From the NCBI GenBank assembly GCA_964188305.1, contig OZ076893.1: a stretch of DNA of 64,000 nt, one strand, 5' to 3'. Shown one piece after another: positions 4,972 to 49,645 of the stretch; the stretch's first letter is position 1, and every line of letters begins with the position of its first letter. The DNA is from Podarcis bocagei (taxonomy: Eukaryota). The position numbers and the translations under genes were made by a program. Under the pieces are notes generated by a model, which was given only the letters and a program-made list of their open reading frames with translations, did no database searches and was not told where the DNA came from.

Positions 4972-5406
4972 TTCTATACCACACTTCATCTGAGGATCAC
5001 AGGATGGTTTACAATACCTCCCCACAATTTAAAAGGCCATAGATTATTTAATTAGCCAAATTTCTTGGAGAAAAGGAATGTTTATGTCTGACATCTAAAG
5101 ATATGTAACAAAGGCACCGGCTGAGCCTCCCTTGGGAGAGCGTTCCACAAACTGGGAGCCACTGCAGAAAAGGGCCATTTTCATGTTGCCATCCTCCAGA
5201 CCTCTTGCGGAGGAAGCACACAAAGAGCCTCAGATGATGATTTCAGGGTCTAGGACAGTTCTTATGGAAGAGGCAGTCTTTGAGGTACTGTGGTTTAGGG
5301 AAGTTTTTAATGTTTAATGTTGTATTGTGTTTTTAATATTTGATTGGGAGCTGCCCAGAGTGGCTGGGAAAACCCAGCCAGATGGGATGAGTATAAAGAA
5401 TAAACA

Positions 5407-9013: not shown

Positions 9014-9177
9014 CTAGGAAGTGGAAGGTAACAGTTTTTACCAGTGACCTACCATCTGCCAGCACCAGCTCACAAGTTTATATTGTACTATATGGGGATC
9101 AAAATAATTCAGGAGCTGTCTTTCTATATGGAGAGGAGAAAAAGGTGTTTGAAAGAGGAAATGAAGATACATTCATT
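9014..9177 (+). CDS. RP1: RP1 long-isoform exon A, PLAT/LH2 domain 1 N-terminal part (RKWKVTVFTSDLPSASTSSQVYIVLYGDQNNSG...FERGNEDTFI)
   Basis: ttctttag acceptor, gtaagt donor, 164 bp, phase 1 to 0. Classic PLAT motifs W-K-V-T-V-x-T, V-Y-I-x-L-Y-G and F-E-R-G-x-x-D-x-F. Confidence 0.88.
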
Positions 9178-9216
9178 GTAAGTTAATATAATGAAATACT
9201 GTTTTTTTATAAGGAT

Positions 9217-11260: not shown

Positions 11261-11347
11261 ATACAAATGGAAGACCTAGGAGAGCTCTACAAAATACGGA
11301 TAGGGCACAATAACTCTGGAGAAACCCCTGCCTGGCACTGCAAAGCG
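11261..11347 (+). CDS. RP1: RP1 long-isoform exon B, PLAT1 middle (IQMEDLGELYKIRIGHNNSGETPAWHCKA)
   Basis: ttttaacag acceptor, gtgagc donor, 87 bp, phase 0 to 0. Contains the LGxLxKIRIGHxNxGxxPxW PLAT motif. Confidence 0.9.
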
Positions 11348-11560
11348 GTGAGCTATGTCCATATCTTAAAATCAATCATTCTTTCTGAAGATCTCGGCAA
11401 ATGACACTTTTGCTGCTTCGCCAAAACCTTAGTCATGCACATACTATATGTTCACATGTTGCATAGCTACACCATTGGAATAGTACATTGTTGCTGCTGA
11501 AGAAAATGTTATCCAGTAAACAAGATTTTGGTAAGCCACAGACTCATGGTTAATGATATA

Positions 11561-12086: not shown

Positions 12087-12817
12087 TATACATATTTAAT
12101 CCCTATGAAAATTCTTCAGCATTTTACTGTTAATTTCTATCTAGTTACACATCTTTGTATGCTGTTTTGAGTAATGCAAACATATTTACAAGCAATTTCA
12201 CTCAATGCATTTTAGTATGTCATTTTCACTAATATATTAATTTTTATCTTCACTTCACCCTAATATATGCATTTTTTAAAACATTGGCTTGACAACTGCA
12301 AAATTTGATAAATGCAAAATTTGAAGGATGGTTGTGTTTTAGTTGTCATCAAAGTGTAAATTTGATAGATTCAGACATGAACTGAATTTGTTGTATTGTG
12401 TCTGCAGTTGGGAGACTGTTCTGGTCAAGTAAGCTCTTGGTGTGATTCAGAATACCAAAAAACCAGAGAAACATTTTGTGCATTTCTGGGGGGTTTAGTC
12501 AGGTTCCATCCTTGAATATACTCATCTTAGACTTCTAAAGGGCACAGACACAATTATCATGTATTCTGAGGGGGGAAAGGTAGATTAGAGAGATTTGTAT
12601 GGTTTACACTTACAGTACAAATTCAGGAAACCTCTGACATGGGTTTTGGTTGGAAAACTCATTCTCTATATTTACAATGCAGCATAAAAAGTGACCCTCA
12701 CATACTCAGGGGTCTGTTCCAGTAAAGACTGTAACAGCATTTGTTCATTTTTGAATAGTATTAGTTCATTTTTGCAAAGATACCACAATAATGTAGACTT
12801 GATTGTTTGCATTTCAG

Positions 12818-12947
12818 CTGCATTTGCAGAATCTTGTGACAGGGGAGCAGTTTGATTTCCCTGTAGATAGGTGGCTGGCACAACAGGATGATGGCGAAAT
12901 ATGTCAAGAACTTCCTGTTTTACATCTGGGTCAGCCCATTCTTCCAG
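12818..12947 (+). CDS. RP1: RP1 long-isoform exon C, PLAT1 C-terminal part (LHLQNLVTGEQFDFPVDRWLAQQDDGEICQELPV...)
   Basis: atttcag acceptor, gtaagg donor, 130 bp, phase 0 to 1. Contains the FPxxRWL...DG motif. Confidence 0.9.
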
Positions 12948-13084
12948 GTAAGGAATACAAAAATAGCAGGAGTTATGGGGACTCTTCCCGTCCCTATAAC
13001 TGCAATCAATAGGAAACTGCTTAGACATGGAAAATACTTAATGGGGAATGATAAATAGAAATATATGACCATTAAATACATGTT

Positions 13085-15699: not shown

Positions 15700-16600
15700 G
15701 TTATCTTAATTATTTATTAAATTTATATACTGTCCTTCTCTGAGGATCACAGGGCAGTTTACAATATTAAAAACACAAAAATGTATAACATCATAACAAA
15801 AATAATATCTCTCCCCCCTCCCCCCAGTTTAAAAGACATTTAATTGTTTAATTAGCCAAAGGCCTGGGAGAAGGGAATGTTTTTGCCTGGTGCCAAAAGT
15901 ATGTAACAAAGGTGCCAGATAACCCTCCCTGGAAAGAGCATTCCACAAGTGGGGAGCCAGGGCAGAAAAGGCCCATTCTCACGTTGCCACCCTCCACACC
16001 TCTTGTGGAGGAGGCACATGAGGAGGGGGCTCGAATGATGATTGCAGGGTCCAGGTCAGTTCATTCAAGGAAAGAGGAACAGGTGATCCTTGAGCCATGT
16101 TGAAGGTCAAAACTAGCACATTGAGTTGGGCCCAGAAAGTAATTGGAAGCCAGTGCGGTCGGGCCAGGATCGGTGTAAGACAGGCATAGGCAAACTTGGC
16201 CCTCCAGATGTTTTGGGACTACAACTCCCACCACCCCTGACCACTGGTCCTGTTAGCTAGGGATGATGAGAGTTGTCATCCCAAAACATCTGGAGGGCCG
16301 AGTTTGCCTATGCCTGGTATAAGATGCTCAAACCATCTTGCCCCAGTGAGCAACCTAGCCGCTGAATTCTGCACCGGCTGAAGTTTCTGAACCATCTTCA
16401 GAGGCAGCCCCACATAGACTGCATTGCAGTAATCTAACCTAGAAGTTACTAGAGCGTAGATGACAGAAGTTAGGCTATCTCTGTCCAGATAGGGGTGTAG
16501 CTGGGCCACCAGCCAAAGCTAGTGGAAGGCACTCAAGGCCACCAAGGCCACTTATGCCTCAAGTGATAGCAGTACCCTCAAGCTTTGCACTTGCTCCTCC
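15700..16600 (-). mobile_element. L2-type LINE 3' fragment, same family as 4908-6050
   Basis: Peptide ALVTSRLDYCNAVYVGLPLKMVQKLQPVQNSAARLL; 3' UTR aligns with 4970-5300 and 27440-27762. Confidence 0.8.
16181..16316. mobile_element. Palindromic hAT MITE (URR1-like) nested in L2
   Basis: TIR CAGGCATAGGCAAACT / AGTTTGCCTATGCCTG; 8-bp TSD GTGTAAGA/GTATAAGA. Degenerate relatives near 19350-19490, 33525-33640, 51723-51835 and 53470-53600. Confidence 0.85.
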
Positions 16601-16865
16601 ATATTGAAAAAGGCACACACCCTTTCATGAATGAGGCAGAGTACAAACATTTATTTTTCCATAAACACATACATCCTGATGTTGATGACACATAAGAAAC
16701 ACCCTATATATGATTTGTTTTCTTATAGACACTAGCTAATATGGGGGCAACTCTTCTTACTGTATAGTAAGCCAAACTTCCCAATAGGATGATACATCTG
16801 TATCAGTTGTTGGTGTTGTGCATGCAATAGTATGTTTGTAAAAGCCTGTCTTCTCTTACTGTCAG

Positions 16866-17017
16866 TGGCAGTGTACGAGGTGCATGTGGTAACAGGTGAT
16901 CTGTGGAATGCTGGAACAGAAGCTGATATCTACATTGCTGTCTATGGAGAAAAGGGTGACACTGGTTCCCGACAGCTCCGTAGGTCAAAGAAACCTAGGA
17001 AATGTGTAAAAGGACAA
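16866..17017 (+). CDS. RP1: RP1 long-isoform exon D, PLAT2 N-terminal part (VAVYEVHVVTGDLWNAGTEADIYIAVYGEKGDTGSRQL...)
   Basis: ctgtcag acceptor, gtgagt donor, 152 bp, phase 1 to 0. Contains the YxVxVxTG..AGT..IYI..YG.KGDTG motif. Confidence 0.9.
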
Positions 17018-17705
17018 GTGAGTGGATTATAGCAATGTGTCTATCTTCTGAAGTACTCCCCTGTTCCCATTTCATTGCGAATATTTCTACAGGGCTGTTC
17101 ATGCATTCAGAAAGCACAGGTTTCTAACCCATAAACTCATTTGTCCCAATAATGCTACTAGCAGTATGTCAGGACATTTTTTAAAAAATCATATCAGTAG
17201 GGACAGTTCAAATATGTAGGTTAGGAAAGTATTCTGCCAAAATCAGATCGGCTAGTGACCCTATGTAGTTTGGCTGAGATGTTCTTCAGCAGACTAAGGT
17301 CCCTGGGGTAGGGTGCAGCCAGCCTTTATAGGAGTGAAGCCTGCTCCACTCCCAAGCCCCACCCACTTGCCATGGCTGGATTAGCCCAAGAGTCAAATGG
17401 TTAGCTGGAGAGAAAGCCCATCAATCCAAGCAGCCGGCTAGGGGATTCCTCAGCTGCCAGCCACCTAGCTTCAGTGTTGCTTCCAAGGGATCTGAGCCCA
17501 CTGAACAATTATTTTAATTCAGGCGAGTTACTGTGATCAACAAGAATTATTTTTGCCATTTACTACACAGGCAGAAACTGGTTTTGGGTATCCATTCATA
17601 CTTATGTGCTTCACTGACCACATAGACTTATAATGTGGAGAGAGAGAGATCTAACATTTTTAATCCTGAAACTTTTCTAATCACACTTTAATTGTTTGAT
17701 TGCAG

Positions 17706-17784
17706 ACTGATATATTTTTACTTGAAGCTGTGCACCTTGGAAATCTGCATAGAATTGTTATAGGACACAATGGACTTGGCTCAG
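17706..17784 (+). CDS. RP1: RP1 long-isoform exon E, PLAT2 (TDIFLLEAVHLGNLHRIVIGHNGLGS)
   Basis: ttgcag acceptor, gtcaga donor, 79 bp, phase 0 to 1. Confidence 0.88.
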
Positions 17785-18702
17785 GTCAGAAATGTCAATG
17801 CAGTGAATTCTGTCAACCTGTTTTGCTGACATAGAAATGATGACAAGTAGCCCATTTATATGACTACTGGACTCACAGAAGCTACATATTTTTATTTTTA
17901 AAATGACAGATCAATATTTAGGACAAGCAGGTTATTTTAGGAAAAATATGCCTACCATCATTTGGTAGGCAAACTGGACATTCAAACTGTTTTCACCCAT
18001 GATTGTGTACACATTTTTTTACATATTTTTTCTTAAACTTCGTGTAGGGAAACTGTAATGTTTGAAGAGGTAAACTGATTTTCAGCCTTTTAGTGAGAAC
18101 TGCAGCATAAAAGAATCAATCTTCTCAGTTATGCTTTGTGCTTGTCAATATACAATTCTCCCAAACTGGTGACAATCTGCATTGTGAACCTTTGATTTGA
18201 TTGGTTGATGATTGAACCATTACTTTTCCGTGCTCCTGGAGTATGCCACAAAATTACACTGCTTCACAGCAGTTTATCATTCAGTAAGCACTGCAGCCTT
18301 TACAGCATAAACTGTAGGATTAGGGTTTTTTCCTCTACATACAATTCACATTTGATCCCCCCCCCAAAAAAAATATCATAGAGAAAAGTTTGCTAATATG
18401 TAAATACTATTCATATGTAGTACAAATAAATGGTCCACAGATGTGTGTTGATTATTTGATTATATAAGACTTGATTATTAGCAGGTGAGCATGTGCTCAG
18501 ATTGAACAGAAAAGGTGAATTCAAGGTGACATTGAGTAAGATATATGTTTCGTTAGCCCTGTGATGACTCAATTGCATATCTACAGCATCCCATGCATTG
18601 TTCATGCACATTTTATCTGGATCTTAGTAACAGTCAATTGTGTGTGTGTGATTAGTTCACTATTAAGAATGGAATCTTTATCATCTTCATAATTCCTCCT
18701 AG

Positions 18703-18778
18703 GAAATGGTTGGTTTCTGGAGAAAATTGTAGTCAAGGATTTTATTACCAGCTCGGATTATAACTTTGCGTGCCACAG
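18703..18778 (+). CDS. RP1: RP1 long-isoform exon F, PLAT2 (GNGWFLEKIVVKDFITSSDYNFACH)
   Basis: ctcctag acceptor, gtttgt donor, 76 bp, phase 1 to 2. Contains the GWFLxxIVV motif. Confidence 0.88.
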
Positions 18779-19892
18779 GTTTGTGAAGTTTATAATTTTG
18801 AAAAAGATTGTGTTAACCAACTCAGAATGTTAGACCTCATTGTACGTGATGATCAGCTACGATCTTCCAAGAACCTGTTGTTAAGTTAGAAGAATTGCAT
18901 ACTCTGAATTTCATAGAATCAAAGAATTGTAGGTTAGAAGGGATCCCAGGGGTCATCTAGTCCAACGCCCCAGCAATACTGTTTGTTTTTACTCAATAGT
19001 GAAGAAAATGCACTGAGACCACTCAAAGGCACACTCAACATTTATTATCTCACGTGATCCAGATATAGCCTTTAGTACTTAAAGAAGGTTCTGGGGCTTA
19101 CCTCACAGGTTCTGAGAAAAGACCTGGCTCAAAATGAGTCTTCCTCAGCAGATTCCAAATATTTTATCATCTTTTGACAATTATTTGTATTTTCATTATA
19201 AAAGAAGATGTTTCTATTTGGTGAGGTTGGGAAAAGGCTTACTGTTTCAAAACATGAAGCAAAAATTTCAAGGATATAGAGCACCTGTTATATGCATCTA
19301 CTAGTCAAATACTATGGGTGGTAACATTGCATATGATCTTTTGATCAAATCATGGGGTGTAGAACCTGTGCCTCTTGCAGTATTGCTGGGCTACAACTTT
19401 CACTGCCTCTGCTCATTGACCATGCTGGCTGGAGCTGATGGGAGCTGGAGCCTAACAACCTCTGGAGGGCCATAGATTTCTCAGTCCTCATGTAAGAGAG
19501 ATTAGATATGCCACATCGCCCCCTCCTGGGCAGTCAGCCCCATTCACACCTCTTCATTAAACATAATGTGAGGGGGAAGTTCCACAGTTGCTTGTGGGGT
19601 GTCAGGGAATACAAGTAACTATTTCTTTACCTCAGTCACCCACATAAAACAATGAAAGCAGAACTCATCCCCTTTTCATAGACCTTAGCACAGGTCTACC
19701 CCCAGCTAATGTTCCCTCTCAAGCTTTGGCCATCCTTTTTTATGGAGGCTGTATTTCATGAAATGTTCTAAATATAATCTTGTCCATGCAACCCAGTACT
19801 ATGCAAGTTTATTTGGAAGTAAGTCATTTGACTGCAGTGGGACTTGCTGCTCTCAAATAAGGCTGCTCCCAAACAAGGGAAATCCAGCCAGA

Positions 19893-19894
<2 letters not shown>

Positions 19895-19940
<46 letters not shown>

Positions 19941-19968
19941 GATTATGATTATTATTATTATTATTATT
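19895..19968. repeat. (TTA)n microsatellite
   Basis: Direct reading; it produces the spurious poly-Y and poly-N ORFs. Confidence 0.95.
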
Positions 19969-20529
19969 GTGAGCAGGATTTTCACAACAAAATATTATTA
20001 ATGACCCGTTCATATCTAGTTTGTTCTTTTACCCATTCATTTCCTTTAACATACAGATTTTTATCTTCCTATATTAATGCTAGTCCCCAATCTATCAATA
20101 GAAATCACACACTGCTCAAGAGGTTAATGGCTTCATCCAGTAGAGATCTTTCAGTACAGTTTTAATTTTATGGCAATCACTTTTTTTTCATAAACACAAG
20201 AATTGTTTGTGCTTGTACTTGTGTTTGTAGTAGCTTTTACTCTTCACATAGCTGTGCACCAGTTTTACAATACTGAGATTAAACTTTCTTAGGGGGAAAT
20301 ACTCATTATTAAACTTCTGAAAGAGAAGTTAACAAAATGTTGCTCTTTTAAAATATTTGTCTTTTCCTAAAGGTAGACCTTTATCTGGTCCCACAACCAT
20401 GTTTCTGATATGTAATCTAGAGTTGGCCAAACTAATAACCCAGGTTCATTTTAATATACCGTACTTGAGTTTATAAAGAGCAGCATGGAAATATGTATTG
20501 TTGTTATATAATGTGTTTTCCCCCCAAAG

Positions 20530-20606
20530 GTGGCTAGATCAAGGAGAAGATGATGGCAAAATTGTTAGAGAACTGTATGTCACTCTTGATGACACATTTG
20601 CTGGGA
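20530..20606 (+). CDS. RP1: RP1 long-isoform exon G, PLAT2 end (RWLDQGEDDGKIVRELYV...)
   Basis: ccccaaag acceptor, gtaagt donor, 77 bp, phase 2 to 1. Contains the RWLD..EDDG.I.REL motif. Confidence 0.88.
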
Positions 20607-20849
20607 GTAAGTATAAACCACTGGCAGACAAGAACATTTCATGAGCCATGGCACTTTGTGGTGTGTCTATAGAAGGTCACATTCTGGGTGTTTCAATGTT
20701 GGTTGTGCATGCAACCAGTATATAATTTCTTTGATATTTAAGGTTTAGCACTGATACCTGCTTCAAAGCCTTAAGGCTTAATCAGTCTGAGATTGTATTC
20801 TTATGCATGTTTAGTTGTGAGTAAGCCTAATTGAATGCATTGGGACTTA

Positions 20850-22143
20850 CCGTATTTTTCGCCCTATAAGACGCACCGGCCCATAGGACGCACCTAGTTT
20901 TCAGGGGGGGGGGAAATCAAGGAAAAAAATATGATTCCCCCCCGCAGCTCTGGGAGCAGCGGACAGGCTGCACGCAGCCTGTGCGCTACTCCAAGACCTT
21001 CTCCCTGCTTTTGCGGGAGGTGGCGGAATTCCCCCACCTCCCGCAAAAGCCCACAGGAGCCCCACGTAACTCCTGCGGGCTTTTCGACTAGGAGGGAGAA
21101 GGGACTGAAAGGGCCAGTCAGTCCCTTCTCCCTCCTTGGGGAAAAGCCCCCAAGAGCCGCTTGCTCTTTAAAGGGTGCGTGGCTCCTGCAGGCTTTTCTA
21201 GGAGGTGGGGGAATTCCCCCCCTCGTAGAAAAGCCAGCAGAAGCCGCGGAGCCCCTTTAAAGAGCGCACGGCTTTTGCCTGCTTTTGCGGGAGGTGGGGG
21301 AATTTCCCCATCTCCCGCAAAAGCCCAAAGGAGGGTTGGAGAGCAGCGGCAAGGCGTCGCGCGCCTTCCTGCTGCCCCCCATACTCTGGGGCTGGCGATG
21401 GGGGAAGCGCTGCTTTCCCCACCGCCAGCCTCAAACCCGGGTTGGAGAGTAGCGGCAAGGCGTCGCGCGCCTTCCTGCTGCCCCCCATCCTCTGGGGCTG
21501 GCGATGGGGGAAGCGCTGCTTTCCCCACCGCCAGCCTCAAACCCGGGTTGGAGAGTAGCAGCAAGGCGTCGCGCGCCTTCCTGCTGCCCCCCATCCTCTG
21601 GGGCTGGCAATGGGGGAAGCGCTGCTTTCTCCACCGCCAGCCTCAAACCCGGGTTGGAGAGCAGCGGCAAGGCGTCGCGCGCCTTCCTGCTGCCCCCCAT
21701 CCTCTGGGGCTGGCGATGGGGGAAGCGCTGCTTTCCCCACCGCCAGCCTCAAACCCGGGTTGGAGAGTAGCAGCAAGGCGTTGCGCGCCTTCCTGCTGCC
21801 CCCCATCCTCTGGGGCTGGCGATGGGGGAAGCGCTGCTTTCCCCACCGCCAGCCTCAAACCCGGGTTGGAGAGTAGCAGCAAGGCGTCGCGCGCCTTCCT
21901 GCTGCCCCCCATCCTCTGGGGCTGGCGATGGGGGAAGCGCTGCTTTCCTCCACCGCCAGCCTCAAACAGCAGACTCTCCTGGCTTCAGCGGAAGCAACGC
22001 GAAGCCTCCGGAGCGCAGGCTTCGGAGGCTTCGTGTTGCTATCGCTGAAGCCAAGGAGTCTGCATTCGCCCCATAAGACGCACCCACATTTCCCCTTCAT
22101 TTTTGGAGGGGAAAAAGTGCGTCTTATAGGGCGAAAAATACGG
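20850..22143. mobile_element. 1.3-kb non-autonomous Tc1/mariner (pogo/Tc2-like) DNA transposon
   Basis: Perfect 27-bp TIRs CCGTATTTTTCGCCCTATAAGACGCAC, TA on both sides, GC/CpG-rich interior, no transposase. Confidence 0.9.
21333..21967. repeat. 106-bp GC-rich tandem repeat, 6 copies
   Basis: Units start at 21333, 21439, 21545, 21651, 21757 and 21863 and differ by only a few substitutions. Confidence 0.95.
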
Positions 22144-22653: not shown

Positions 22654-22783
22654 TGGGCAGCTGAAAAGTGGAAATTTCAGAAAGGCAATACACTTCAGTT
22701 TTACAACAAGGTATCCCATGGATTCATATGCCTGTCTCCTGATGGAACTGTTCATGCCCATGGTGACAAGAAAGATAAATACG
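22654..22783 (+). CDS. RP1: RP1 long-isoform exon I, FGF-like beta-trefoil domain 1, first part (WAAEKWKFQKGNTLQFYNKVSHGFICLSPDGTVHAHGDKKDKY)
   Basis: ctttccag acceptor, gtaact donor, 130 bp, phase 0 to 1. Confidence 0.85.
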
Positions 22784-22985
22784 GTAACTTTGTTGTCTCT
22801 TCTTTGTGAGCATGGTAAATTTTTGTTAACCCTTGTTGTGAAGAGGACTCTCTAAACTTTTGTAGATGTACAGTACAGAGTTAAGACAGTAGATTATTTA
22901 AACGAAATTCTTTGTTTTACACACATTACACTTATTAAGGCTAAGAGGAAGGGGCAGCTCCTTGAGCCTTTGTTGTACGGGCTGT

Positions 22986-23176
22986 CATTGGCGTAGCGTG
23001 GGGGGTGCAGGGGGGCCCGGCCGCACCGGGCGCAACATCTGGGGGTTAGGGTTAGGGGGCGGAAATCCACGGGTTAGGGGGCACAAATCCATGGGTTAGG
23101 GGGCGCAAATCCACGGGTTAGGGGGCGCAAATTACTTGCCTTGCCCCGGGTGCTGACAACCCACACTACGCCACTG
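22986..23176. mobile_element. hAT-type MITE with telomere-like repeats (copy 2, opposite orientation to 7097-7265)
   Basis: Same TIR family as copy 1; perfect 8-bp TSD CGGGCTGT (22978-22985, 23177-23184). Confidence 0.88.
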
Positions 23177-23299
23177 CGGGCTGTAGAACCACACAGAAAT
23201 GCTCACATTGGGTTTGTGTAGCTTCACAAATGAGAAGCAGCAAATATCAAGCCTGGAAATTGCTCTATTCATCCCAGCCACTTTCCTCTGTAATTCTAC

Positions 23300-23302
<3 letters not shown>

Positions 23303-23345
<43 letters not shown>
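23303..23345. repeat. (TG)n microsatellite
   Basis: Direct reading. Confidence 0.95.
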
Positions 23346-23348
<3 letters not shown>

Positions 23349-23739
23349 AGGTAGCTTGTAAGACCTACGTGCTGATAGCAGCAGTGTACACTACCTGCTT
23401 AAAATGCAGCAAGGTCATTTCTCCACACTGTGATTCAAATTGTATCTTCACATCCTTGTTTGTATCAGTATGTCTGGGTGTGTTTCGATGTCACCCACTG
23501 TCTAGTCACACTAGTGGGCAAGGATAAACATTCCTGAGAGAACAACATTGATATAGCAATTTCACCACCAGGACCATCACCAGAGAATCTAAAAGCCTCA
23601 CATTTTATCTGTGAGAGGAACAATATATTTCAGAAAGAGTAAACTTCATGCTGTCTTTTGGGTTTTAAGAATGAGAACATCCCAGACAAAATGCTATGAA
23701 ACAGCTGATCAGGTTTTTTTGCTTCTGTTTTTTTTAAAG

Positions 23740-23843
23740 GTCTTTTCGATGTGGCCATCAAAAAAGGAAACACATGTGTGTTTAAAAGTCACCCAGTGCC
23801 ACACCTAGCCCTTGGCTTTGCTCATGGTTCAGTTGCTGGAATG
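23740..23843 (+). CDS. RP1: RP1 long-isoform exon J, FGF-like domain 1, middle (GLFDVAIKKGNTCVFKSHPVPHLALGFAHGSVAGM)
   Basis: Poly-T then aaag acceptor, gtatga donor, 104 bp, phase 1 to 0. Confidence 0.85.
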
Positions 23844-25394
23844 GTATGAAGCTGCCCAGGTTTTTCCCATGTGTCTATGAATTTCCAAAAATGTAAACTG
23901 TATCGCAAATATAGTGGTCACCAAAACCAGACGTATGTGATGAATCTCATGAACCTTGCCTCCCCACCCCCATTTGTAATCAGTTTTTTGTTTATAAATA
24001 GCTAAATATCGAAATATTAAGAAGTTTCTTTTCAGGATGAGATTACAGGAGACAAATTGTGCCAGTATATTTCAAGTGACTATTCTCAAACTGTTGAAGC
24101 CTTCAGGATTTGTCCCTGAAAATGTGTGATACGTACTATTTTAGAGTGAATAATAAGAAAGAAGTAAAATAGTTGCTTGTTTTCACTATTTAAAATAGCA
24201 ATGTAGCTTTCTTTTATGCATTCTCACTGAAGCATAGTGGGAAAGCTATATTTGTGACATATTAACAGTTCTTGAGGGCCTTTTGGATTGAAATCATGCA
24301 GAGAAAGTGGAAATAAATAAAAGGTTAATACCTTACATTTTGTGGGTGGGTTTGAATTACCGTACTGGGCTCCATGATTTTTGGTTCAGTCTTTTCTCTT
24401 TGGCATAACCAAAACTACTAATGCTGCTGATATTGAGAATTTACAAAAAACCATACAGATTGCATTCAGTAGATAGGATGAAATATGGCAAGATCAGGAA
24501 CTGATTAATATGCAGTGCAGTCTTCCCAGCCTGATGGGAGTTGTCCAAAAACATCAAGAGAGCACCAAGTTGACAAAAGCCAACACAGTTTAAAGAGAGA
24601 ACCAGAGGGCAGTGGGGTGTGGTTCTAAGAAGCCTTGTACCACAAAGAAGTCTTCTTTGCCTAGAGTGTTTTATTCCAAAGCTGTGCACTGTGCTGCTGT
24701 ATTTTTATACTATTGCATATTAGTACCCGTTATAATTTACTTAATACTATGCTCTTAGCATTCTAGCTAAGAGCACCATCCATAAAACCACAGCGATGCC
24801 TGTAATGCTGGAGGATTATCCCACAAATCATATTTGCTGGTTTGGCCTTAATAATGTCTGTTTTTTTTCTTTATAAATACAATGTAACGGGATTTCACTC
24901 TTATAAGAAGCCACAGATAGTTTCTACTGGAGACAATGATAAGGTGGAAATCTTGAATTTGAACTGAACTGCCAAGAGACTTTGGTTCTAGAGTATGACC
25001 TTCTGATTTGAAGCCTTCTGTGTGACCTTTTGCAGCGTTGTTGTTGAAGGTGCTAAAGTACCCTTTAAGAAATAAGGAGAGGTGAAATTCTCTGGATACT
25101 TTATATCTCCAGATAGCAAAATCTGAGACTTGAAATCCTGCAGCATCCAGCAGCGTCAGAATGCAAGCCTGAAGGCAACAGAAGAAAAATGTCCCCATAG
25201 AAACTAATGTGTTAAGGATTTTATAAATTGTTGAACTAAATAATGAATAATAAATGAATAACTGCAAGGTGATCTTTGGTGCTTATGGCAATCTGCAGTT
25301 GGCCCTGCAGTTTGGGTGCAAAGAAAACCATTACTTTTTATCTGGCTCAGTTTTCAGTCTAATATACTGATTAGTCCCATCTTGCCCTTATTAG

Positions 25395-25568
25395 AACAAT
25401 GGTGACGTCCACTGTGAGCTGCAGGTTCACGTTCAACCAAATCGTTGCACAATTCTGGAATCTGCCCAGAACCCAGGGCAAATGGTGACTTTCAGTCTCC
25501 AAGGCACTGTAGCTGATGATGCCATAAGCTATGCAGGACTGACAAAGGAGTTTGTAGTTCATGTTAAG
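25395..25568 (+). CDS. RP1: RP1 long-isoform exon K, FGF-like domain 1, last part (NNGDVHCELQVHVQPNRCTILESAQNPGQMVTFSLQG...KEFVVHVK)
   Basis: cttattag acceptor, gtaaga donor, 174 bp, phase 0 to 0. Confidence 0.85.
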
Positions 25569-26160
25569 GTAAGATTGGAGGAGAAAGGCAATTGGGTGGT
25601 GTGTGTCATAAGCCAGTGCCTTAACTGGTTTCAACAGTTGAGAGAGATCTCTCCACCCACTAGGTGGAGCTGAAGACTGCAATCGTCAAAATCACTGTGT
25701 GAGGCTAGGGTTTCTTTTTAAATCCCTTTGTTGTTCCTTGTAGCCCTGAATAATTCTGCCATACACAACCAAAAGTCAGGTGAGGTTGTGTGCGAACACA
25801 TATAAAAACAACCAAGTCTGATATGTAGGACTGCTTCACACTTTGTGTGTGATTCCCCCCCCCCCTTCCTACATGGAAATGATATCTTTTTTTTAAGCTG
25901 TCACTTGCAAAGTGGAGCACAAGTTTTATTTCCCTGTGAAAAGATAAACTTCCCACATAGGTTTTTATTTAACTGGAGCAAAATAAATATATGTGCCACA
26001 TTTCACAAGTACCACATTTGTCTTAGAGTGAGAACTAGGAAATACTTAGGCTTGGTTTTAAGCAAGCCACTATCTCTCAGACCCCCTCTCCCAGCATCTA
26101 CTAATCCGGCTGAAGTAAGTGGAAGTGCAATCCTACACATGACATCTCCTCAAAAGTAAG

Positions 26161-26312
26161 TCATAGAATCATAGAATCCTAGAGTTGGAATAGACCACAA
26201 GGGCCATCGAGTCCAACCCCCTGCCAAGCAGGAAACACCATCAGAGCACTCCTGATATATGGTTGTCAAGCCTCTGCTTAAAGACCTCCAAAGAAGGAGA
26301 CTCCATCACACA
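26161..26312 (-). mobile_element. CR1-type LINE 3' end
   Basis: (ATTCTATG)n-type tail read as catagaatcatagaatc, plus the typical CR1 3' UTR. Shorter relatives at about 18912-18978, 28560-28628 and 33645-33750. Confidence 0.7.
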
Positions 26313-26546
26313 CAGTCCCAATGAGTTATTTGACACTTACTTCCAGGTAAGCTGGTATAGGATTGCAGCCTTATTGGCTTGTATCAAATGTGTGGGAGAC
26401 CTGGCACCATAAAAAAGGAAACATTTTGTGTTTTGCTGTGGGTAACAAGGATTGGAGAGTCACTGCACTGGGATGAAGGGTGAAGAAGTAAAGAGCTGTT
26501 TGAAAGGCCATATTATTTACAGTTGGTTCTTTTTGCTGATTTCTAG

Positions 26547-26759
26547 GGAGTGTTCCACAACAGTGCCATAATTTTGCTCACTACTAGCTACTGCCAGTCT
26601 CTCTGCCTGAGGCCTGATGGGAGCTGCAGTGGAGCAGGAAATCAATCTGATGACTCTTACTGGAGAGTACATAAAATCAGCTCTGGGGTTTGCATGTTTG
26701 AAAGTGTAAAAAACCCAAGAATGTATCTGAGGATCAAGGATGGGCAGTGTAATGGAACG
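26547..26759 (+). CDS. RP1: RP1 long-isoform exon L, FGF-like domain 2, first part (GVFHNSAIILLTTSYCQSLCLRPDGSCSGAG...GVCMFESVKNPRMYLRIKDGQCNGT)
   Basis: atttctag acceptor, gtaagg donor, 213 bp, phase 0 to 0. Confidence 0.87.
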
Positions 26760-27224
26760 GTAAGGAGCTCTTTTTCATGCTTTCTCTGTGGATGTGGACA
26801 TAACTTGCCACAAGAAGAAGCAATTTTAAGTGTGCTAACATAGAAGAATCTGGCTAAGACTTGACAGTACTATGATTTTTGTTTCCCAGAAATATGGTAA
26901 AGATTATATGAGACAGGTGTCATAATATGAAAGAACCACTGAGTAGGGTGGGATTCCTGGGAGGAACGAGGCAGGGGTGGAGCAAGGTGGGGACAGTGGG
27001 GGCCTATTGCCCGGGGTGTCATCTCAGAAGGGGGTGACATTCAGTCTGTTGCCCGCCCATGACTCCCGCCTACTCCGATCCGTCTGGAGAAGAGTGGGAG
27101 CTGTGGCAATCCCCCCTTCCACCTTCCTTTTTACAGCCCTGCACTCCTGGTCTGGTGGAGGAGGCATGTATATGGCATGCAGGGAGAGGACACGAAGGGG
27201 GGGGGGCTCACTGTCCCTCAGACC

Positions 27225-27430
27225 TTGTGGGGGGCTGGACTATATTTTGAAAAAAAATAATGAACGAATTTCTATGCCCCACAAATAACCCAGAGATGCA
27301 TTTTAAATAAAAGGACACATTCTACTCATCTAAAAACACACTGATCCCTGGACCGTCTGCAGGCCGGATTGAGAAGGCGATTGGGCCGCATCTGGCCCAC
27401 GGGCCTTAGGAGGCCCACGGGCCTGCCCCT
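27225..27430. mobile_element. hAT-like MITE remnant
   Basis: ggccggattgagaaggcgattgggccgcatctggcccacgggcc...cccctg is a typical hAT subterminal/terminal sequence. Confidence 0.45.
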
Positions 27431-27439
27431 GCCCTATAT

Positions 27440-27762
27440 GAACCAACCCAGGCCTTCAAAGATCATTGGAGGTCCTTTTTCAGGTGCCTGCTTCTGAGGT
27501 GTGGCAACACGAAAGCAGGCCTTTTCTGTGGTGGCTCCCTGCTTGTGGTATGCTCTCTCCAGGGAGGCTTGCCTGGCACCTTCACTACATATATTTAGGT
27601 GCTGGGCAAAAACATTCCTCTTCTCCCAGGCCTTTGGCTAATTAAATAATCTATGGCCTTTTGAACTGTTATTATGTTATGTATTTTTGTGTTTTAATAT
27701 TGTAAACTGCCCTGTTATCCCCAGATGAAGGGCAGGGTAGAAATGTAATAAATAATAATAAA
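27440..27762 (+). mobile_element. L2-type LINE 3' UTR fragment
   Basis: Reverse-complement match to 4970-5230 and 15700-16010; ends in an (AAT)n tail. Confidence 0.75.
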
Positions 27763-28726
27763 AACAGGAAAGCTTAAAACTTTTTTTTTACAAAACAAGG
27801 CCTGTTTTTATTCTGTAAGGGGTTATACAACAACCTTTGTAACAACCACAGTTATGTAAAATGTTTCAGATAGTCATGCTAATAGTTCCTGTAGATAGAG
27901 TGTGCCTACCTTAAGAGTCTCTCTCCTCCCCATGGATCAAATTGATTAACTGCGGGTTTCTTGATAATAATAATGTTAAATCTGGTTTTAAGGTCAGTGC
28001 AAATTGCTGATTAAAACTGGATGGCTGCCTATAATATGCCTGAAGTATTGCATCTAATAAGTATCAGTAGATCTTTAGTAATGTGAATGTCAATGAATAT
28101 ACTGAAATGGCCATTATAATGTTGTGTCAAACAGTACTATTAATAAGATGGCTGAGCTCTCAGGCTCTTAATAATGGCTTCTTCAGAATAGAGATAGACT
28201 ATTAGAGGGATAAATAGTAATATTACTTTAAGTATTATCCTGGGAAGCCAGTAGGAGACCTGTTATTTTGGAAGCTGTGTCAGATTCTACAGGAAATGTT
28301 ATGTTTAGAAATCCACTCCATGTTTTAAAGTCGTTCAGTATACCAAATTTGGAGCAGTTCTTTCTTTGGCGTTACTTAGGGTTTTGCTCTTTGTAGGTTG
28401 AACAGGGTCAAGCCGCCATGAGAGATTTTGGTAGGCTGCATTCTTTGTTTGGTTTGCACAGATTTATTTAATTAATCAGATTTATTCTGTCTTTAACATC
28501 TTTTCTGCATCTTTTGACCACTGAACTGCATGTTGAACTGTATATGAATGCTTTAGCTGAGATTCCTTCATTGCAGGGGGTTGGACTAGATGACCCTAGG
28601 GGACCCTTCTAATTCTATGATTCTATGAACTCCCTTGCCTTAATGAGAAATTTACCAGAAAAATAATCTTTGTATTGATGTGTGGACATTCAGCTGATTT
28701 CTTGTTATTATGCTGCTTTCTTACAG

Positions 28727-28904
28727 GGCACAGGAGATGTGGACTGTCATTTTAAAGTGGAAAAGAATTTAGAAAGTGGGTCTGTAAGCCTAGAATCTGC
28801 ACGAAACAGAGGGATATATGTAGGTCTCCTGCCTAATGGTCAGACCAAACCAGTTGTTCACACTGGAGAAAGCAACATTTGGTTTTACCCGCAAGTTGTC
28901 AAAT
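28727..28904 (+). CDS. RP1: RP1 long-isoform exon M, FGF-like domain 2, last part (GTGDVDCHFKVEKNLESGSVSLESARNRGIYVGLLPNGQTKP...WFYPQVVK)
   Basis: tttcttacag acceptor, gtatgt donor, 178 bp, phase 0 to 1. Confidence 0.87.
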
Positions 28905-29982: not shown

Positions 29983-31522
29983 TATTTGAAAATACCTCAG
30001 GCGAGCTAAGTTTTCACTCACACAAGAACCCAAAAAGATGACTGGTGGCAATTTAGAAATTAAATTAATTGGCGCACCATACAATAAGTTCACTACACGT
30101 TTAACTGAGGGCAGTCAGTGGTGGTAGATCCATTACAGTTACTTTCCACTTAAGCATCATTAAGAGGCAATGCAGCACTGCAGCACTTTCTTAGGTGGAC
30201 TAAGTAAGCAAGATTTAATGTGTGTGCACACACATCTGTCTATCTATATGCACATACTTTTATCTTACAGTATTACTACCTGGCCAGAGCCCTTAGGGAA
30301 AGGATATATTTTTTATCATTCTGAAGAAATAATAAATGAATGCATGATCTTGCATCCAGACTTTGCTCCTGCAAAGTAACTTTGCTGATTTTCTTCTCCC
30401 CAACAACACCTGCTGCACAGTACTAGAGGGTTGGGAAGAAGTCACTCTGGGACTGCAGGATGTGAGGGGAATAGGCAAACATCAGCTTCCCCCTTTTGCT
30501 GGATCAAAGGCTTTCCATGGATGGAAACAGCCTTTCTATCTGTGAAAGGCAAAGTCTGGATTCATCCTGTGAAATGGTCTCATTTAGGATCATATTTAGG
30601 CCAATCCATTAATCTCCTTGCATTTGTAACTATTCCTATCATGTTTTTTGACTTCCTGGGGGGTATTGAGTTGGGGAAAATTAATTCAGTTACTCAGTTT
30701 GTATTTCTTGTCACAACTTGGCAGGTAGATGAGTGCTGGAAAGCACCTATTAGAGACTGGTGTGAGGGGTTACAGTATATGAGAGCAGGTAGAGAAGCTG
30801 CCTTGTTGTTCAGAGATGGGAGAGGGTTTGTTAGCTGGGCTGCAGAACCTGTCAGTGGCTGTGGGGCTGGACTCCCCTCCTTGACTGAAAAAACTGAGCT
30901 GGACCATGGAGTCACTCAGTGGTACAGCCAGGCTTGGCCCCAGGGGAACTGGAGTGGTTAGACCTCTTCTCCATCATGACCAGATTTGATTATTGCAATA
31001 TTTGTAAGTTTAAATTTTTCAATGGATTTTAAAAGTTGCAGCTTATTTCAAAGAAGATGTTGCCAATTTGAAATCTATAACTCTACATCTGATTCTTCTT
31101 TGCTGCTGCAGTATGTATAGGAGCAGAGCTTGGTGGACTGTGCACACATTTAATTTTGGCTGAAGAAGGCTTATGGCAGTGTTTTCTTCTTAAAGAGAAG
31201 GAAACAGAATTATGTGGTAGTGGAATATACCTCAGGGACAAGCCACTTGAAGCATACATAGCTGATAACACATGACTTGGATTTCCAAAGCAGTAATAGG
31301 AATTTATTACCATCTCATTTTGTGTAGGGAGATATTAAGGAGTGAGCTTCTAGGAGACCAAACTCAAATATGTATATCTTCCACAATGCATAAAGATAAA
31401 ACATGCATTAATAATATGATATATTGAAAAACTGCAAGACCTATTGCCTTCTTGATTTTTTGGGACATTTCTAGAGAAATAAAATATGATGACCTTTAAT
31501 CTTCCTTTGAATTAAATTTCAG

Positions 31523-31654
31523 TTGGAAGAGAGAAGCCTATGGGAACATCTGCAACGCCTGCTCAGCAGAAAGAAGTGATCAGAGAATCCAAACACCAAC
31601 AAGCAGGAACTCAAAATTTAGTGTCCTACAGATGTCCAGATTCTCCTCCCTCAA
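31523..31654 (+). CDS. RP1: RP1 long-isoform exon N, linker (FGREKPMGTSATPAQQKEVIRESK...DSPPS)
   Basis: aatttcag acceptor, gtaagc donor, 132 bp, phase 1 to 1, open frame. Confidence 0.75.
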
Positions 31655-31834
31655 GTAAGCGACCATGTAAAACAATAGCCTTATAGTGCAGCATTAATGT
31701 TGTCTTGATTCAGTTTGGCACCTAATTGATGAGACTTGATTTTTCTTACCACTTAAGCTCTACAATGAGTTGCAGATGGTGACCTTATGCTGTCATAGAG
31801 CTTATGTCATCTGATATCCCTCCAAGTTATGGCT

Positions 31835-35995: not shown

Positions 35996-36408
35996 TGATA
36001 GTTTCCCATGGCAACTATCACTATGTTGGGCACCACTGTTATTTTTGGGAGATTGAGTTATTTGCTCCATGCTGCAGACCCTTGAAAAAAGGGGCGGGGA
36101 TGTTGAAAAAAATAAATCAGTGTCTAATTGGCAACCTGCTGCACATAAACATTTAATCACATGTGGCAGCTGCAACATGGAGTCCTTTACTACAGACTCA
36201 AAAAGGTGCCTACGCTGTCCTGCACTTGCAAGGACTGCACTTGCTGTCCTTTCCCAAGCTTTCCATGATAGTTACATCAGTTATCCAGAGCACTGTGATT
36301 TGCACATATTGTGGTTGTTTTCAGTTCTCTGTCATTGTGTTTTGGGAAAAGGCCTTCAGACTCATATTTATCCTATTATAACTACTATTGACATTCTGTA
36401 CTTCACAG

Positions 36409-36611
36409 AGGATATGAGAAATATCCAAGATGGCGAGTCGCCTTTTCCTTCAGCTGATAAATGGAAAGTGTCAGTGCTGACAGGAAATGCAGGAACCCGA
36501 GCAAATGTCACTCTCTGGATATATGGAGACAAAGGGGTTGCTGGACCAATAGCTCTTGGCAAGGACAACAGAGAACAGCTGTTTCTACCCAGGATGGAAG
36601 ATTCATTCCAG
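36409..36611 (+). CDS. RP1: RP1 long-isoform exon O, PLAT3 N-terminal part (…DKWKVSVLTGNAGTRANVTLWIYGDKGVAGPI...FLPRMEDSFQ)
   Basis: cttcacag acceptor (an alternative in-frame acceptor lies at 36453), gtagct donor, phase 1 to 0, PLAT motifs present. Confidence 0.85.
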
Positions 36612-38978
36612 GTAGCTAATATTATTTTGTGACATATTTCCTACCCACACAATATCATTCTTTCCAGTGTTAGGGAGAAGAACTTCCTCCTATATTTACT
36701 GCCTCAAATAAATTTATCTAATGTCTTTGGATTCATCATTAAATCAGCTGAATGTATATAGGAAATGGCAGCTGGAATTCTCTTTCCTGCCATATCTCTG
36801 AGAGCAGGGGAAACTGCAGAAGCAAATTGTTTTCATTAAGACAATTAGTTATAGGCAATTGGTTGAAAACTTGTCTTTAAAACAATATGCCTCTGTCGAA
36901 ATCATAGGTAATGAAAGGAAAGTAAACATCTTGTCTAAGGAAAGGCATATATCGCTTCTGCAACATTTTTTGGTACTGAAATGTCATCTTGTGAACAGTG
37001 ATGTAAAAGAGGTAATTCATAGCTGGGTCTGTGAAGAGTGATAAAAGGGTTGTTTTCCAGAAAGAAATAAGAAGAGAACGAAAAGGGCTTCATTATAAGA
37101 AGTTACAAGGTACTTGTAGGCAGATTATGCTAGCTTGAAATTTTAGGACCCACTTTACTAAAATATTTCAGTAACTGGAACTGGACCGTACTGCTTTCAT
37201 GTTAGAACTGTCTTGGAAATATTGGAACTGTCCTTGGAAGGGCAGGATAAACAGAACCCTTTCTAATCACAGCAGGAGTGACTATCCCTTTCTGAAGGTT
37301 AGAAAGAATTTTTCATGTAGCTCATAGGGTGTACTGAACTACTCAAAATCACTTTCTGTGCCTTTGCCAAGGAATAGCCACCCCCTCTGATTATAGCATC
37401 TTTACTATGCTGTACTGATGGAGAAAGGATGTTGATGTTTCATTTAGGCTTTCTATTGGTGGATTTCAACACTGTCAAATCTGGAAGACCCGGTCCTTTC
37501 TAGCTGGCTTTTACCACCTGAATGCTAGGGCCACATTGCATGTTATGCCTGCCACAGAATTATAACCCCTGGTGGACACTCTCCTCTCTCCCCCACCCCC
37601 CTTAATGTTTAGGGATATTTTACCCATTGTGACTTGCCATGCCACTGCTAGGGACACAGAAACTAACAAGATGATGTTGCAACTTCACAGGGTGTAGTGT
37701 TCCTCACACTACACACGACAGTTGATAATTCTGTTTTCAATGGCATGCCTGTGGGACAAGTAATGTAGGGGAGAGTGTAGGGATTTGGCCTTTGCTGAGC
37801 TGGCCTCACCTATCTCTGGCTGTGGTAGTTTGGCTCTCTTCTCCTCTCCTCACTCCCAGGGACCTTCATAAACAGCCTGCTTGAACATCCAGAGAGGTAA
37901 AGATTGTGGTGATTTGAACTATGTTTCTGTGGCTTGGCTGCCAGGCATAAAGGTCAGACTTGCTGCCAAAATTGTTTAAACTGTTCTGGAATGTGAATTG
38001 ACTGCTGCTGTTGTGCTGTTGTGCCACCTTCAAATGTTGATCTGAAAAATCTGGTAGTGATCCTGAAATCCAGCAAGCTGTTGACAGTTCCACTTACTAC
38101 ATCTGCCCACATGAAGAAACATTACGTAGCTTCTTGACATCTGCGTTACAAGCCAAATCAATTGTAGTCTCATGAGCCACAGAGCAAATTATGTTTTCTC
38201 ACTCAAAACAGGAATTATTATTTTTTGAAGCCTTTAAAATTCAAACCCAGGAAACAGTGTGATCAGAAGCAAAACACAATTGCAGAAAACATAAATGTTT
38301 TTTTTAAAAAGAAAGAAAGAAAGAATAATAGGAAACAGAGAATAGGAAATTAATTTATGCATAGTAAGAGCATGCCAGAATTCATACTGACAACCAGATT
38401 TGTCATGGATATCTGCTACTCAAAATTAGAAAAATAGATCTACAAAATGAATTTTCTTCAGCAGGATTTACATGCAGCTAGTAAAGATACAGTCATCCCT
38501 ATAAGTTGGCATGAAGAAGGGAAGGCTAAAAGCCTTCACCACATTTGTTGCAAATGAACCCAATGCTTTTAAACAATACCAAGTCAACAGCCCAGCTATT
38601 CTATTCCACAGACTGAAAAGAATCACAAAATTTCACCTAAACACCTAAACTTGTATTGGAGGGACTTTTAAAATCTGATTGTGTAGAATGGATGGGATGT
38701 TTATAGTTGTTCTTGTTACATACTTTTTATATGCTTTGTGTAGCATAAATAGCCTCAGTGAAAGTTCTGGAGATTTTTGCTTTTGAAACCTATGTTTAAA
38801 GATCTCTGGGATTTCCTCTCCCTCACCTAGTGAATTATTCATAACCAATATAGGTAATAGCATGTCTGCAGCACTACCTTTCCTCAGAATACATGGATTC
38901 CCTGAGATACGAGTATATTGACCTGCCGCAAATCAGATGCTACCTAGTATTGTTGTGTTCTGAGGATATTGATCTTAC

Positions 38979-47053: not shown

Positions 47054-48629
47054 GTAAGCCTGCTGAAGAGAATCAGTATACTCCCATTTCAGATCAACTG
47101 AAAGTGGTTTCAATACACAGCATACTTAGCACTAGTTCTGAAGGAAATTGAGTCAAATTTTGCACCACTTTCTTTACTAACACTTAGTAAACTATAGTAC
47201 CTTTGCATACGTTTTCTGAGAGAGACTATCAGGAACCAGACAAAGCTCAGGAAAAGCAGGATCCTATAAATAACTGATAAAAGAAACTGAAGAAAAATAG
47301 ACAAGAGAAAAATAAGGCAGCAGGAAAGACTTTTGGGATGGTTGTGAAAGGTGAAGAAAAGGTAGACTCTTAACCTGTCAACTGCCAAGATATTTCTTGC
47401 TGCCAAAATGCATGACTTTGAATAACCTTTAAGAATTTCAGCTAACTGTTCTTTTGTCTGGTTTTATATTTAGAAGCCTAACGGTTTTTTATCTTTTAGT
47501 TTTGCATGAGCAATATGTGCATATATAGTAATCAGTCCTTCACAATATCTACCACTGAAGTAATCAGCCGGTTCATATATTTGATTAGCTAGGGCCCTTT
47601 CCTGCTTGAAGTTCAAAATCTCTATCAGGGTGCTGAGTTCTTTCATTTGCCTTCCTAATGGTTCTCTTCAAGTCAAATGTACTTGTTAGTGTTTAGATGA
47701 TGTGTGATGCATTTTGCTTCCTTAAAACAGAGCTCCCAAATGGTGCTGCTCACTCCCCTGCTAGGGCCAAAACTTTAAAAAGCCTTTCAGACCCAATTTT
47801 CTTGTCTTCATTTACTCACCTTCCGCCATACATGGTGCCACCTGCCCCTGGCTCATGGCTGGACCAGCTCTGGAGTCCAGACCCCAACAACAAGACTCTT
47901 TTCACTTCATGTGCCCTTCCTAGCAATGGATCCCTTGGCTGCTGTACTGTTTTTCTCCCTTCTGTGAAGGGAGCAGACAGATGTGGTTCATCAGTCTGAA
48001 ACATCTCTGATACAAAGCATCCTTGGAAAGGGAAAAATGCCTGGATAGTTCCAGATATGTATGCACCATCTGGAGTTTCATTGGAAATTGAGTTTCTGAT
48101 ACTGCAGTTACCTTCTTTGTGCTTCTTGTGACCTACATGGCTCTGCTGCTGCTTAGGATGGGCTTATAATTCAAGTTTAACAAAGCCATTGTATGATAGG
48201 GCAAATTAGCAGTACTTAGTGAGATAAAAGGTAGAGCATTCTATAATTCAAAGGGCTGTACCAGAATGAGATTTGTTTGCTGAAACCATATATTTATTTA
48301 CCATATTAAAAGGTGACATAATGATAGTCATTTCAAAAAACTTAATATTTCTGAAATGGTCTGTTGTGTTTTGCATTGCTCCTGCAAGGGTGTGTTGCCC
48401 AAGCTTCCCATAAATTAAGGGCTGCTGTATGATAATTGCATGTGTGTCACATGCAAATATTTCATTATCAATGTTAAAAGCTTTGTAGGACTTATGGAAC
48501 AATTCCTATCCTGTGCAACATGTTCACTTGAAGAAATTATCCCAGTTAGACTAATGCTACGTATGGAAATAACAAAACTTACTTCATTTTCTTTATTTCA
48601 TTTTGTTTTTTCTCTTTTCCGACTCTCAG

Positions 48630-48688
48630 GTGGCTGCCATTTACCTCCCAAGGCACAGTTCATTCAGAAATAGAACTCTCTGCTCAAG
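48630..48688 (+). CDS. RP1: RP1 long-isoform exon S, PLAT4 end (RWLPFTSQGTVHSEIELSAQ)
   Basis: Long pyrimidine tract with ctcag acceptor, gtaaat donor, 59 bp, phase 2 to 1. Paralogous to exon G (G|TGG CTx start). Confidence 0.72.
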
Positions 48689-49600
48689 GTAAATGATACA
48701 ATTAAAATATGGAGGTGGAGATCCTAAACACGAGGGGAGTAAGCGTCACTGAACACAGTGGGACTTACGTCTGAGTAACATTGCATAGGACTGCTCTGTA
48801 AATCAATTTGCTGTTTGCACAAAGGAAAATGAAAGCCAAGTGGCCCACTTGATTTTAGAGGCTAGCAGGGTGGGGGTTATAAAACAATTGGGACAAAGGG
48901 AGAATTTCCAGGCTGGAGTGGGAGGGTTAAGCACTCCCTTCATGCTTGCAATTTTTCTTTGCCTTTGCCCTCTGCTCCTGTATTAGTATAAAGATGGAAA
49001 CTACATAACACCAGGACAGAAACCCTTGTTTCCCTTAAAACTTATAGTATGTATCTTATCTGCAACTGCACAATAAGTTAGTTGTGTTGCTGCCGGTAAA
49101 TGCAATGCAATGCCCCTTTCACCTCTGGCCTTCCAGCTAGTAATGATTCATGAGCATATGTACCAACAGCTGACATGACTTTCCTGCCTTCTCTTCATCC
49201 ATGCAAATCACTGCATATGACCTTGCATTTCTATTCTATGGTAATAGCAGCAAGGGGGCATCGCTGCAGGAGTACCAGTGACCAGCCAATGATCAGTTTC
49301 TACTACAGGTATAATGGTCCAGGTATTTCTGCACCTATACCTCCAGATCTTCTATACTGCAGTGAGTTATGGGCAGAGCATAAAGCAGTAATTACCACTT
49401 ATTTAGTCTACCATGTCAAAGGACCATTTTTGGTTACTGTTTTCAAATGCTTCTACAGTCTCCATATTGGTTTGTGAAAGAATACATTTTTCTCTGTAAA
49501 AGCAGAAGTGTTAATATATGAACACCTCCTCCCTCCTTCCACTTTTCATTGTAACCTGACAACTGTATTATTAACTGCACTGATGTTTTATTTTTGGCAG

Positions 49601-49645
49601 AAATGCAAATAAATCATCAGCTGAAAATGCAAGAGGAAGAAAATG
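49601..49645 (+). CDS. RP1: RP1 long-isoform exon T, linker (EMQINHQLKMQEEEN)
   Basis: tttttggcag acceptor, gtaaat donor, 45 bp, phase 1 to 1. Confidence 0.72.

Follow-up and report, generated by a model that had tools for sequence, protein, structure and literature searches.

Tandem beta-trefoils in the long form of RP1 are probable homologues of the FGF domain

Introduction

RP1 is a major retinitis pigmentosa gene, and work on it has dealt with the DCX domains and the long exon-4 tail. DCX domains are microtubule-binding and PLAT domains membrane-binding; LOXHD1, a protein of stereocilia, is a chain of PLAT domains in which we know of neither DCX domains nor a pair of trefoils. The fibroblast growth factor (FGF) family includes ligands such as FGF1, FGF2, FGF8 and FGF18 as well as the FHFs (FGF11-14), which are free, intracellular single-domain proteins. 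Two core introns, ici1 and ici2, have been stated to be ancestral in Fgf genes (PMC11733497), and FGF-like domains have been reported in choanoflagellates and early animals (PMC8224027, PMC8226934). Here we describe a module encoded by five plus-strand exons, I to M (22654-28904), in a 64,000-nucleotide stretch of the genome of the lizard Podarcis bocagei (GenBank assembly GCA_964188305.1, contig OZ076893.1; hereafter the window). These exons very probably encode tandem beta-trefoils that are true homologues of the FGF domain and that, in the alternative long 3' region of RP1, come after the second PLAT domain. In a literature search, no paper came up that describes PLAT or FGF-like domains in RP1.

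Results

Exons I-M are bounded throughout by AG acceptors and GT donors and splice in frame into a product of 266 residues, of which 136 (repeat 1) come from exons I-K and 130 (repeat 2) from exons L and M. The original prediction had proposed a pair of repeats of about this size; their borders proved clean, the first and last positions agreed with its coordinates, and every peptide string that it quoted was recovered on the plus strand, in stop-free frames between positions 22600 and 29000. Aligned to each other, the repeats scored 96, compared with 27.6 ± 4.9 for shuffled sequence, a likeness far beyond chance that indicates that the two are homologous. In the leader of the trefoil pair, residues W1, W6 and K7 were invariant in all 11 aligned orthologues. 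A start of exon L at about 26598 was considered and rejected in favor of 26547, because the orthologues are 17 residues longer at this point, and because use of the acceptor at 26546/26547, which is preceded by the better pyrimidine tract, keeps the frame. The 17 residues gained in this way form the first strand of repeat 2, and all 71 residues of the exon are identical (100%) to residues 675-745 of a Podarcis muralis gene model (P0087). A search of this genome found no paralogues of exon M.

The repeats were compared with known domain families using the Pfam FGF model (PF00167), which has a curated cut-off of 24 bits. Full domains of orthologues from Bombina (54.9 bits), Bufo (43.6), sawshark (35.7) and Saccoglossus (25.7) all scored above it, and the whole P. 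muralis protein scored 27.9 bits. Repeat 1 was matched in all 10 orthologues (best E 2.5e-11) and repeat 2 in 8 of 11 (best E 6e-7). Other trefoil families were far weaker: Fascin reached E 0.0058 (2 of 10 orthologues), RicinB_lectin_2 E 0.0041 (3 of 10) and IL1 E 0.35 (1 of 10), while IL33_bt scored 20 bits against its own cut-off of 27. Single exons of the window gave only weak Pfam matches (IL33_bt, E 0.045; FGF, E 0.23). Profiles built from the repeats were also searched against all PDB sequences and returned 127 matches for repeat 1 and 116 for repeat 2. The best 60 for each repeat were all natural FGFs (8, 2, 18, 1, 7) or FGF1-derived Symfoil designs, and FHFs were absent among them. Finally, hhalign against the eight FGF cores of this genome gave probabilities of 97.3% for repeat 1 and 94.2% for repeat 2.

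Structure prediction was carried out on the Bufo orthologue, which is 57% identical to the window's own spliced product. AlphaFold modeled the two-domain module as beta-trefoils with a mean predicted local distance difference test score (pLDDT) of 90.8 and a predicted template modeling score (pTM) of 0.86; repeat 1 alone had a pLDDT of 89.9. The domains are beta-trefoils of about 120-130 residues with 12 strands, and the structures nearest to the model were FGF18, 10, 8, 4, 2 and 1. A Foldseek search with repeat 1 alone returned FGF1, FGF2, FGF12, FGF18 or Symfoil in all of the top 50 places, with template modeling (TM) scores of 0.75-0.87, root-mean-square deviations (rmsd) of 2.5-3.2 Å and 17-28% identity. 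When the two-domain model was used, the double trefoils botulinum HA33 and fascin ranked first, at an rmsd of about 10-18 Å; we rejected them as nearest relatives because this rank is a coverage effect of spanning both domains at so large an rmsd. The prediction of an FGF-like beta-trefoil was thus borne out by Pfam, by the PDB profile matches and by Foldseek, with the fold itself predicted at a pLDDT of 90-91 and the fascin, ricin and IL-1 families trailing at E values of 0.004-0.35.

The positions of the introns provide a further line of comparison. In this genome, PF00167 detects the FGF genes one exon at a time, the matches breaking near profile positions 33 and 67, and of 13 FGF middle exons inspected, 12 have a length of exactly 104 nt, with phase 1 in and phase 0 out; exon J is their counterpart in repeat 1. 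We aligned eight FGF cores rebuilt from this genome with the RP1 repeats using MAFFT, which is blind to introns. Both introns of repeat 1 fell in the same columns and phases as in all eight FGF genes, the 3' end of exon I lying at the place of core intron 1; the corresponding exon of the snail Physella is likewise 130 nt. In repeat 2, the single internal intron, a phase-0 intron just before exon M, coincides with the second core intron (ici2), and a counterpart of ici1 is absent. The conserved cysteine to which attention had been drawn in both repeats is the 7th residue of the exon that follows ici2, in the eight FGF genes with a fixed exon start as well as in both repeats. By a rough estimate, random placement would produce the shared columns and phases and the 104-nt exon with a probability of the order of 1 in 10^4 to 10^5. 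In the protein of the sponge Sycon, both trefoils carry two such introns: one, of phase 1, falls in the same column, and the other, of phase 0, lies three columns off. Since both introns occur in the sponge trefoils, they are an old feature of the wider FGF-like family, and we rejected the idea that intron 1 ties repeat 1 to the FGFs in particular.

The place of the repeats relative to the FGF family was examined in a maximum-likelihood tree of 32 domains that included eight FGFs of this genome, one of which (FGF gene L) we take to be an FHF. The eight FGFs formed one clade (100/100) on a long branch (2.72), with the RP1 repeats outside it. Repeat 2 formed a clade of its own (100/99), and the FGFs grouped with repeat 1 (100/98) and not with repeat 2. 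In the approximately unbiased (AU) test, an arrangement with the RP1 repeats as sisters was not rejected (p 0.155) and one with the FGFs beside repeat 2 was disfavored (p 0.024). Profile scores were 87 between the two repeats and 68 between repeat 1 and the FGFs, and in every profile comparison repeat 1 was nearer to the FGFs than repeat 2 was.

Several features set the RP1 module apart from the FGF ligands FGF1, FGF2, FGF8 and FGF18. It is an internal tandem within an intracellular protein of about 2,800 residues, without a signal peptide at that point and without the basic heparin-binding cluster, and its loop before strand 10 is shorter. In their last 32 residues, the FGFs have 6-9 lysines and arginines (net charge +4 to +9), whereas the RP1 repeats have 0-6 (net -3 to +3), so the heparin-binding site would not be conserved in RP1. 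The FHFs, for their part, are single-domain proteins inside the FGF clade, whereas the RP1 repeats fall outside it. Judged from sequence, the repeats lie outside the FGF ligand and FHF family.

Tandem trefoils are also found in sponge and protist proteins described as FGF-like. Those of Sycon ciliatum (XP_065178290.1), Planopodium and Anaeramoeba (KAJ6242516.1) were matched by the RP1 repeat profiles with E values of 1e-19 to 1e-58. Unlike RP1, the Sycon and Anaeramoeba proteins have no DCX or PLAT domain, in the recorded Pfam matches of the former and in our Pfam scan of the latter. The N-terminus of the Sycon protein (gene 1001-11207 of L050) is rich in Pro, Tyr and Gly and includes a PPPSY motif; the protein has no Pfam match on record, and three exons encode each of its trefoils, the first of 112 nt, the second of 122 nt and then a last one. 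Anaeramoeba flamelloides proteins (P0039/P0057) carry five to six nearly identical FGF-like trefoils and are annotated "fibroblast growth factor 1", which means that the Pfam FGF model is not specific to animals. The kinship of the RP1 repeats with the FGFs is probably very old.

The module lies, as had been proposed, between PLAT domains of the long form of RP1, with PLAT exons on both sides (Table 1) and DCX exons upstream. By tblastn, the window is collinear with residues 274-1253 of the P. muralis model, which is named "oxygen-regulated protein 1", at 82-100% identity; residues 1-273 of the model had no match in the window. This model was the closest found (93% identity in repeat 1 and 98% in exon M). 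Pfam identifies two DCX, 13 PLAT and one FGF domain among its 2,811 residues, and the trefoil module occupies residues 539-804. In a second orthologue model (P0005), Pfam places a PLAT domain at residues 404-510. Two DCX exons lie on the same strand 7 kb upstream of the window (G000:C8:53622593-53623081, +). The predicted architecture of the long form is two DCX domains, two PLAT domains, two FGF-like trefoils and eleven more PLAT domains in about 2,800 residues. From its position and size, the large open frame that runs off the 5' end of the window is read as a candidate for the classical RP1 exon-4 tail. It is matched neither by P0005 nor by residues 1-273 of the P. muralis model, and the long form would therefore skip it and continue into the PLAT exons. 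A 2,045-nt Logan contig (SRR17497070) reads PLAT-trefoil-trefoil-PLAT, and because it does so in one uninterrupted frame, we infer that it is a spliced transcript of an orthologue.

Table 1. Exons of the trefoil module and other features of the RP1 locus, in window coordinates
Feature	Position	Strand	Description
Exon I	22654-22783	+	130 nt, phase 1 out; leader (WxxEKWKF) followed by strands 1-3 of trefoil 1
Exon J	23740-23843	+	104 nt, phase 1 in, phase 0 out; counterpart of the FGF middle exon
Exon K	25395-25568	+	174 nt; remainder of trefoil 1; conserved Cys is the 7th residue, as in the FGF third exon
Exon L	26547-26759	+	213 nt; opening two thirds of trefoil 2; lacks an internal equivalent of FGF intron 1
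Exon M	28727-28904	+	178 nt, phase 1 out; last third of trefoil 2; Cys is the 7th residue
Large open frame	2-3874	+	1,291 codons, runs off the window's 5' end; candidate exon-4 tail
First PLAT domain of the long form, exons	9016-9183, 11261-11368, 12815-12982	+	tblastn with P0005/P0087
PLAT domain preceding the trefoil pair, four exons	~16856-17017, 17703-17786, 18702-18785, 20507-20632	+	tblastn with P0005/P0087
Linker exon	31516-31659	+	downstream of the trefoil pair; tblastn
First exon of the next PLAT domain	36405-36614	+	downstream of the trefoil pair; tblastn

Orthologues of the module are widespread. Exon M, searched against 1.8 billion representative proteins, gave 50 matches. The long ones were named "oxygen-regulated protein 1", the product of RP1, in Bufo and Bombina, and "LOXHD1-like" in a caecilian, a sawshark, Saccoglossus, amphioxus and a snail. 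The Bufo module, used as the query in a word-based search, retrieved about 80 models of about 2,800 residues from frogs, a caecilian, turtle, alligator, many birds, lizards, snakes, Amia, sturgeon, coelacanth, catshark and three mammals, most of them with precomputed DCX, PLAT and FGF matches in Pfam; further named orthologues come from lamprey, Ciona, amphioxus, a hemichordate, sea urchin and molluscs. The Saccoglossus orthologue has exons of 104, 174, 216 and 178 nt in place of J, K, L and M, and that of Physella has exons of 130, 104 and 177 nt in place of I, J and K, its last exon also ending in phase 1. The whole module and its exon sizes are conserved from snail and hemichordate to this lizard, and the 3' half of RP1 with its PLAT domains and trefoils is at least as old as the last ancestor that snails and vertebrates shared.

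A few other features of the locus and its orthologues were recorded. About 50 residues of the fourth PLAT domain (P. muralis residues 1042-1091) had no match in the window, around 47068-48628, and the small exons that flank this gap are present at 48628-48687 and 49600-49647 (100% identity); the central exon of the domain may have been lost, have diverged or be unassembled here. The intron just before exon I contains a G+C-rich tandem repeat at 21333-21967 (six copies of 106 bp, 97% matches) that yields long spurious open frames in several frames, and microsatellites lie in introns at 19895-19968, (TTA)25, and 23303-23345, (TG)21. Recurring translated stretches in the introns at 5099-5314, 15852-16100 and 27410-27640 (for example "...EEAH.E....MI.GSR...") are probably copies of one interspersed repeat. 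The RP1 models of Bufo gargarizans (P0058) and Gastrophryne (P0067) also show Pfam matches to reverse transcriptase and integrase (PF00078, PF00665), which are probably transposon pieces pulled into the gene models.

Discussion

Taken by themselves, the trefoil fold of exons I-M and its homology to the FGF domain are, in our judgment, highly probable. Several observations nevertheless weigh against reading these exons as FGF-homologous trefoils of a long RP1. The single Podarcis repeats score 17.8 and 22.9 bits with PF00167, under the cut-off, so the match is marginal in this lineage. A genome-wide scan with the same model gave 59 FGF exon matches, none of them in the window, because exon-sized pieces are too weak at the scale of a genome. 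PF00167 also matches the amoebal multi-trefoil proteins, and a Pfam match alone is therefore not proof of kinship with animal FGF ligands. In the structural comparison by itself, FGFs outscore ricin-type trefoils by just 2-3 Z units. In run searches, no run on record as RNA held the exons. Lastly, the function that we propose below is drawn solely from domain context.

Three other explanations were considered. The pair might be a generic beta-trefoil unit, akin to the actin-binding trefoils of fascin or to a ricin-type sugar-binding pair, with its FGF likeness due to convergence or to the shared fold. Fascin and botulinum HA33 do consist of two adjoining trefoils; however, the domains are arranged differently, as the two-domain rmsd of about 10-18 Å attests, and these proteins lead the structural matches only through coverage of both domains. 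A single domain favors FGFs in Foldseek, VIA-align, Pfam, PDB profiles and hhalign, and two introns match FGF genes in column and phase, down to the 104-nt exon, all of which makes a generic trefoil very unlikely. The original prediction had gone further in the opposite direction and suggested cryptic members of the FGF family, either FHF-like free intracellular channel partners or ligands after release. This part of it did not hold up and is, in our view, very improbable: the clade of eight FGFs, putative FHF included, excludes all RP1 repeats with full support (100/100); the best profile matches are to FGF8, FGF2, FGF18 and FGF1, with no FHF among the best 60; the terminal basic cluster is missing (6-9 lysines and arginines in FGFs against 0-6); and the module sits inside a protein about 2,800 residues long. 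By these sequence features, the module would be neither a growth factor nor an FHF.

The host gene also has to be weighed, since the exons could belong to a separate downstream "LOXHD1-like" gene, the fused RP1 models being annotation artefacts. RP1 and LOXHD1 have a long PLAT chain in common and many databases call the long form "LOXHD1-like"; in some, the PLAT-trefoil protein goes under the name "lipoxygenase homology domain-containing protein 1-like" and its model has no DCX domains. By contrast, DCX, PLAT and FGF matches occur in Pfam on one model in frogs, sawshark, lizards, birds, Saccoglossus and Physella, all models that join the three being predictions, and in this genome the DCX exons lie only 7 kb upstream on the same strand. 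We consider a separate gene unlikely and retain the assignment of the trefoils to the long form of RP1.

What the trefoil pair does in such a protein may be suggested by its neighbors. The DCX domains would hold the long form on axonemal microtubules and the chain of PLAT domains would contact membranes. The two trefoils, predicted to be one rigid unit (pTM 0.86), could act as a fixed binding adaptor between them, supplying one specific protein or head-group contact in a ciliary linker from microtubule to membrane. We offer this role as a tentative possibility.

A more speculative idea concerns the origin of the FGFs. Because the FGFs group with repeat 1 in the tree (100/98) and repeat 1 is the nearer of the two in profile comparisons, the first trefoil (exons I-J-K) of an ancestral ciliary protein of the RP1-like DCX-PLAT type could have given rise to the secreted ligands. 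Against this stand the AU result for sister repeats (p 0.155), the long FGF branch and the fact that the introns are older than the split, and we regard such a descent as doubtful. If it were true, the long form of RP1 would be the closest living non-ligand relative of the FGFs.

The domain is less new than first thought. Describing it as hidden, as the original prediction did, was an overstatement: it is already visible in RefSeq models, which carry a precomputed PF00167 match, and FGF-like domains outside the ligand family have already been reported. The significance lies elsewhere. RP1 has a second, deeply conserved 3' half with two PLAT domains, two FGF-like trefoils and eleven more PLAT domains, and variants in the exons of this long form would escape tests that end at exon 4. 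For FGF biology, in turn, the module is a relative of the FGF domain that is well defined, matched in its introns and not a ligand, and it occurs in most of the animal lineages sampled; this makes the origin of the FGF ligands testable by trees and gene structures.

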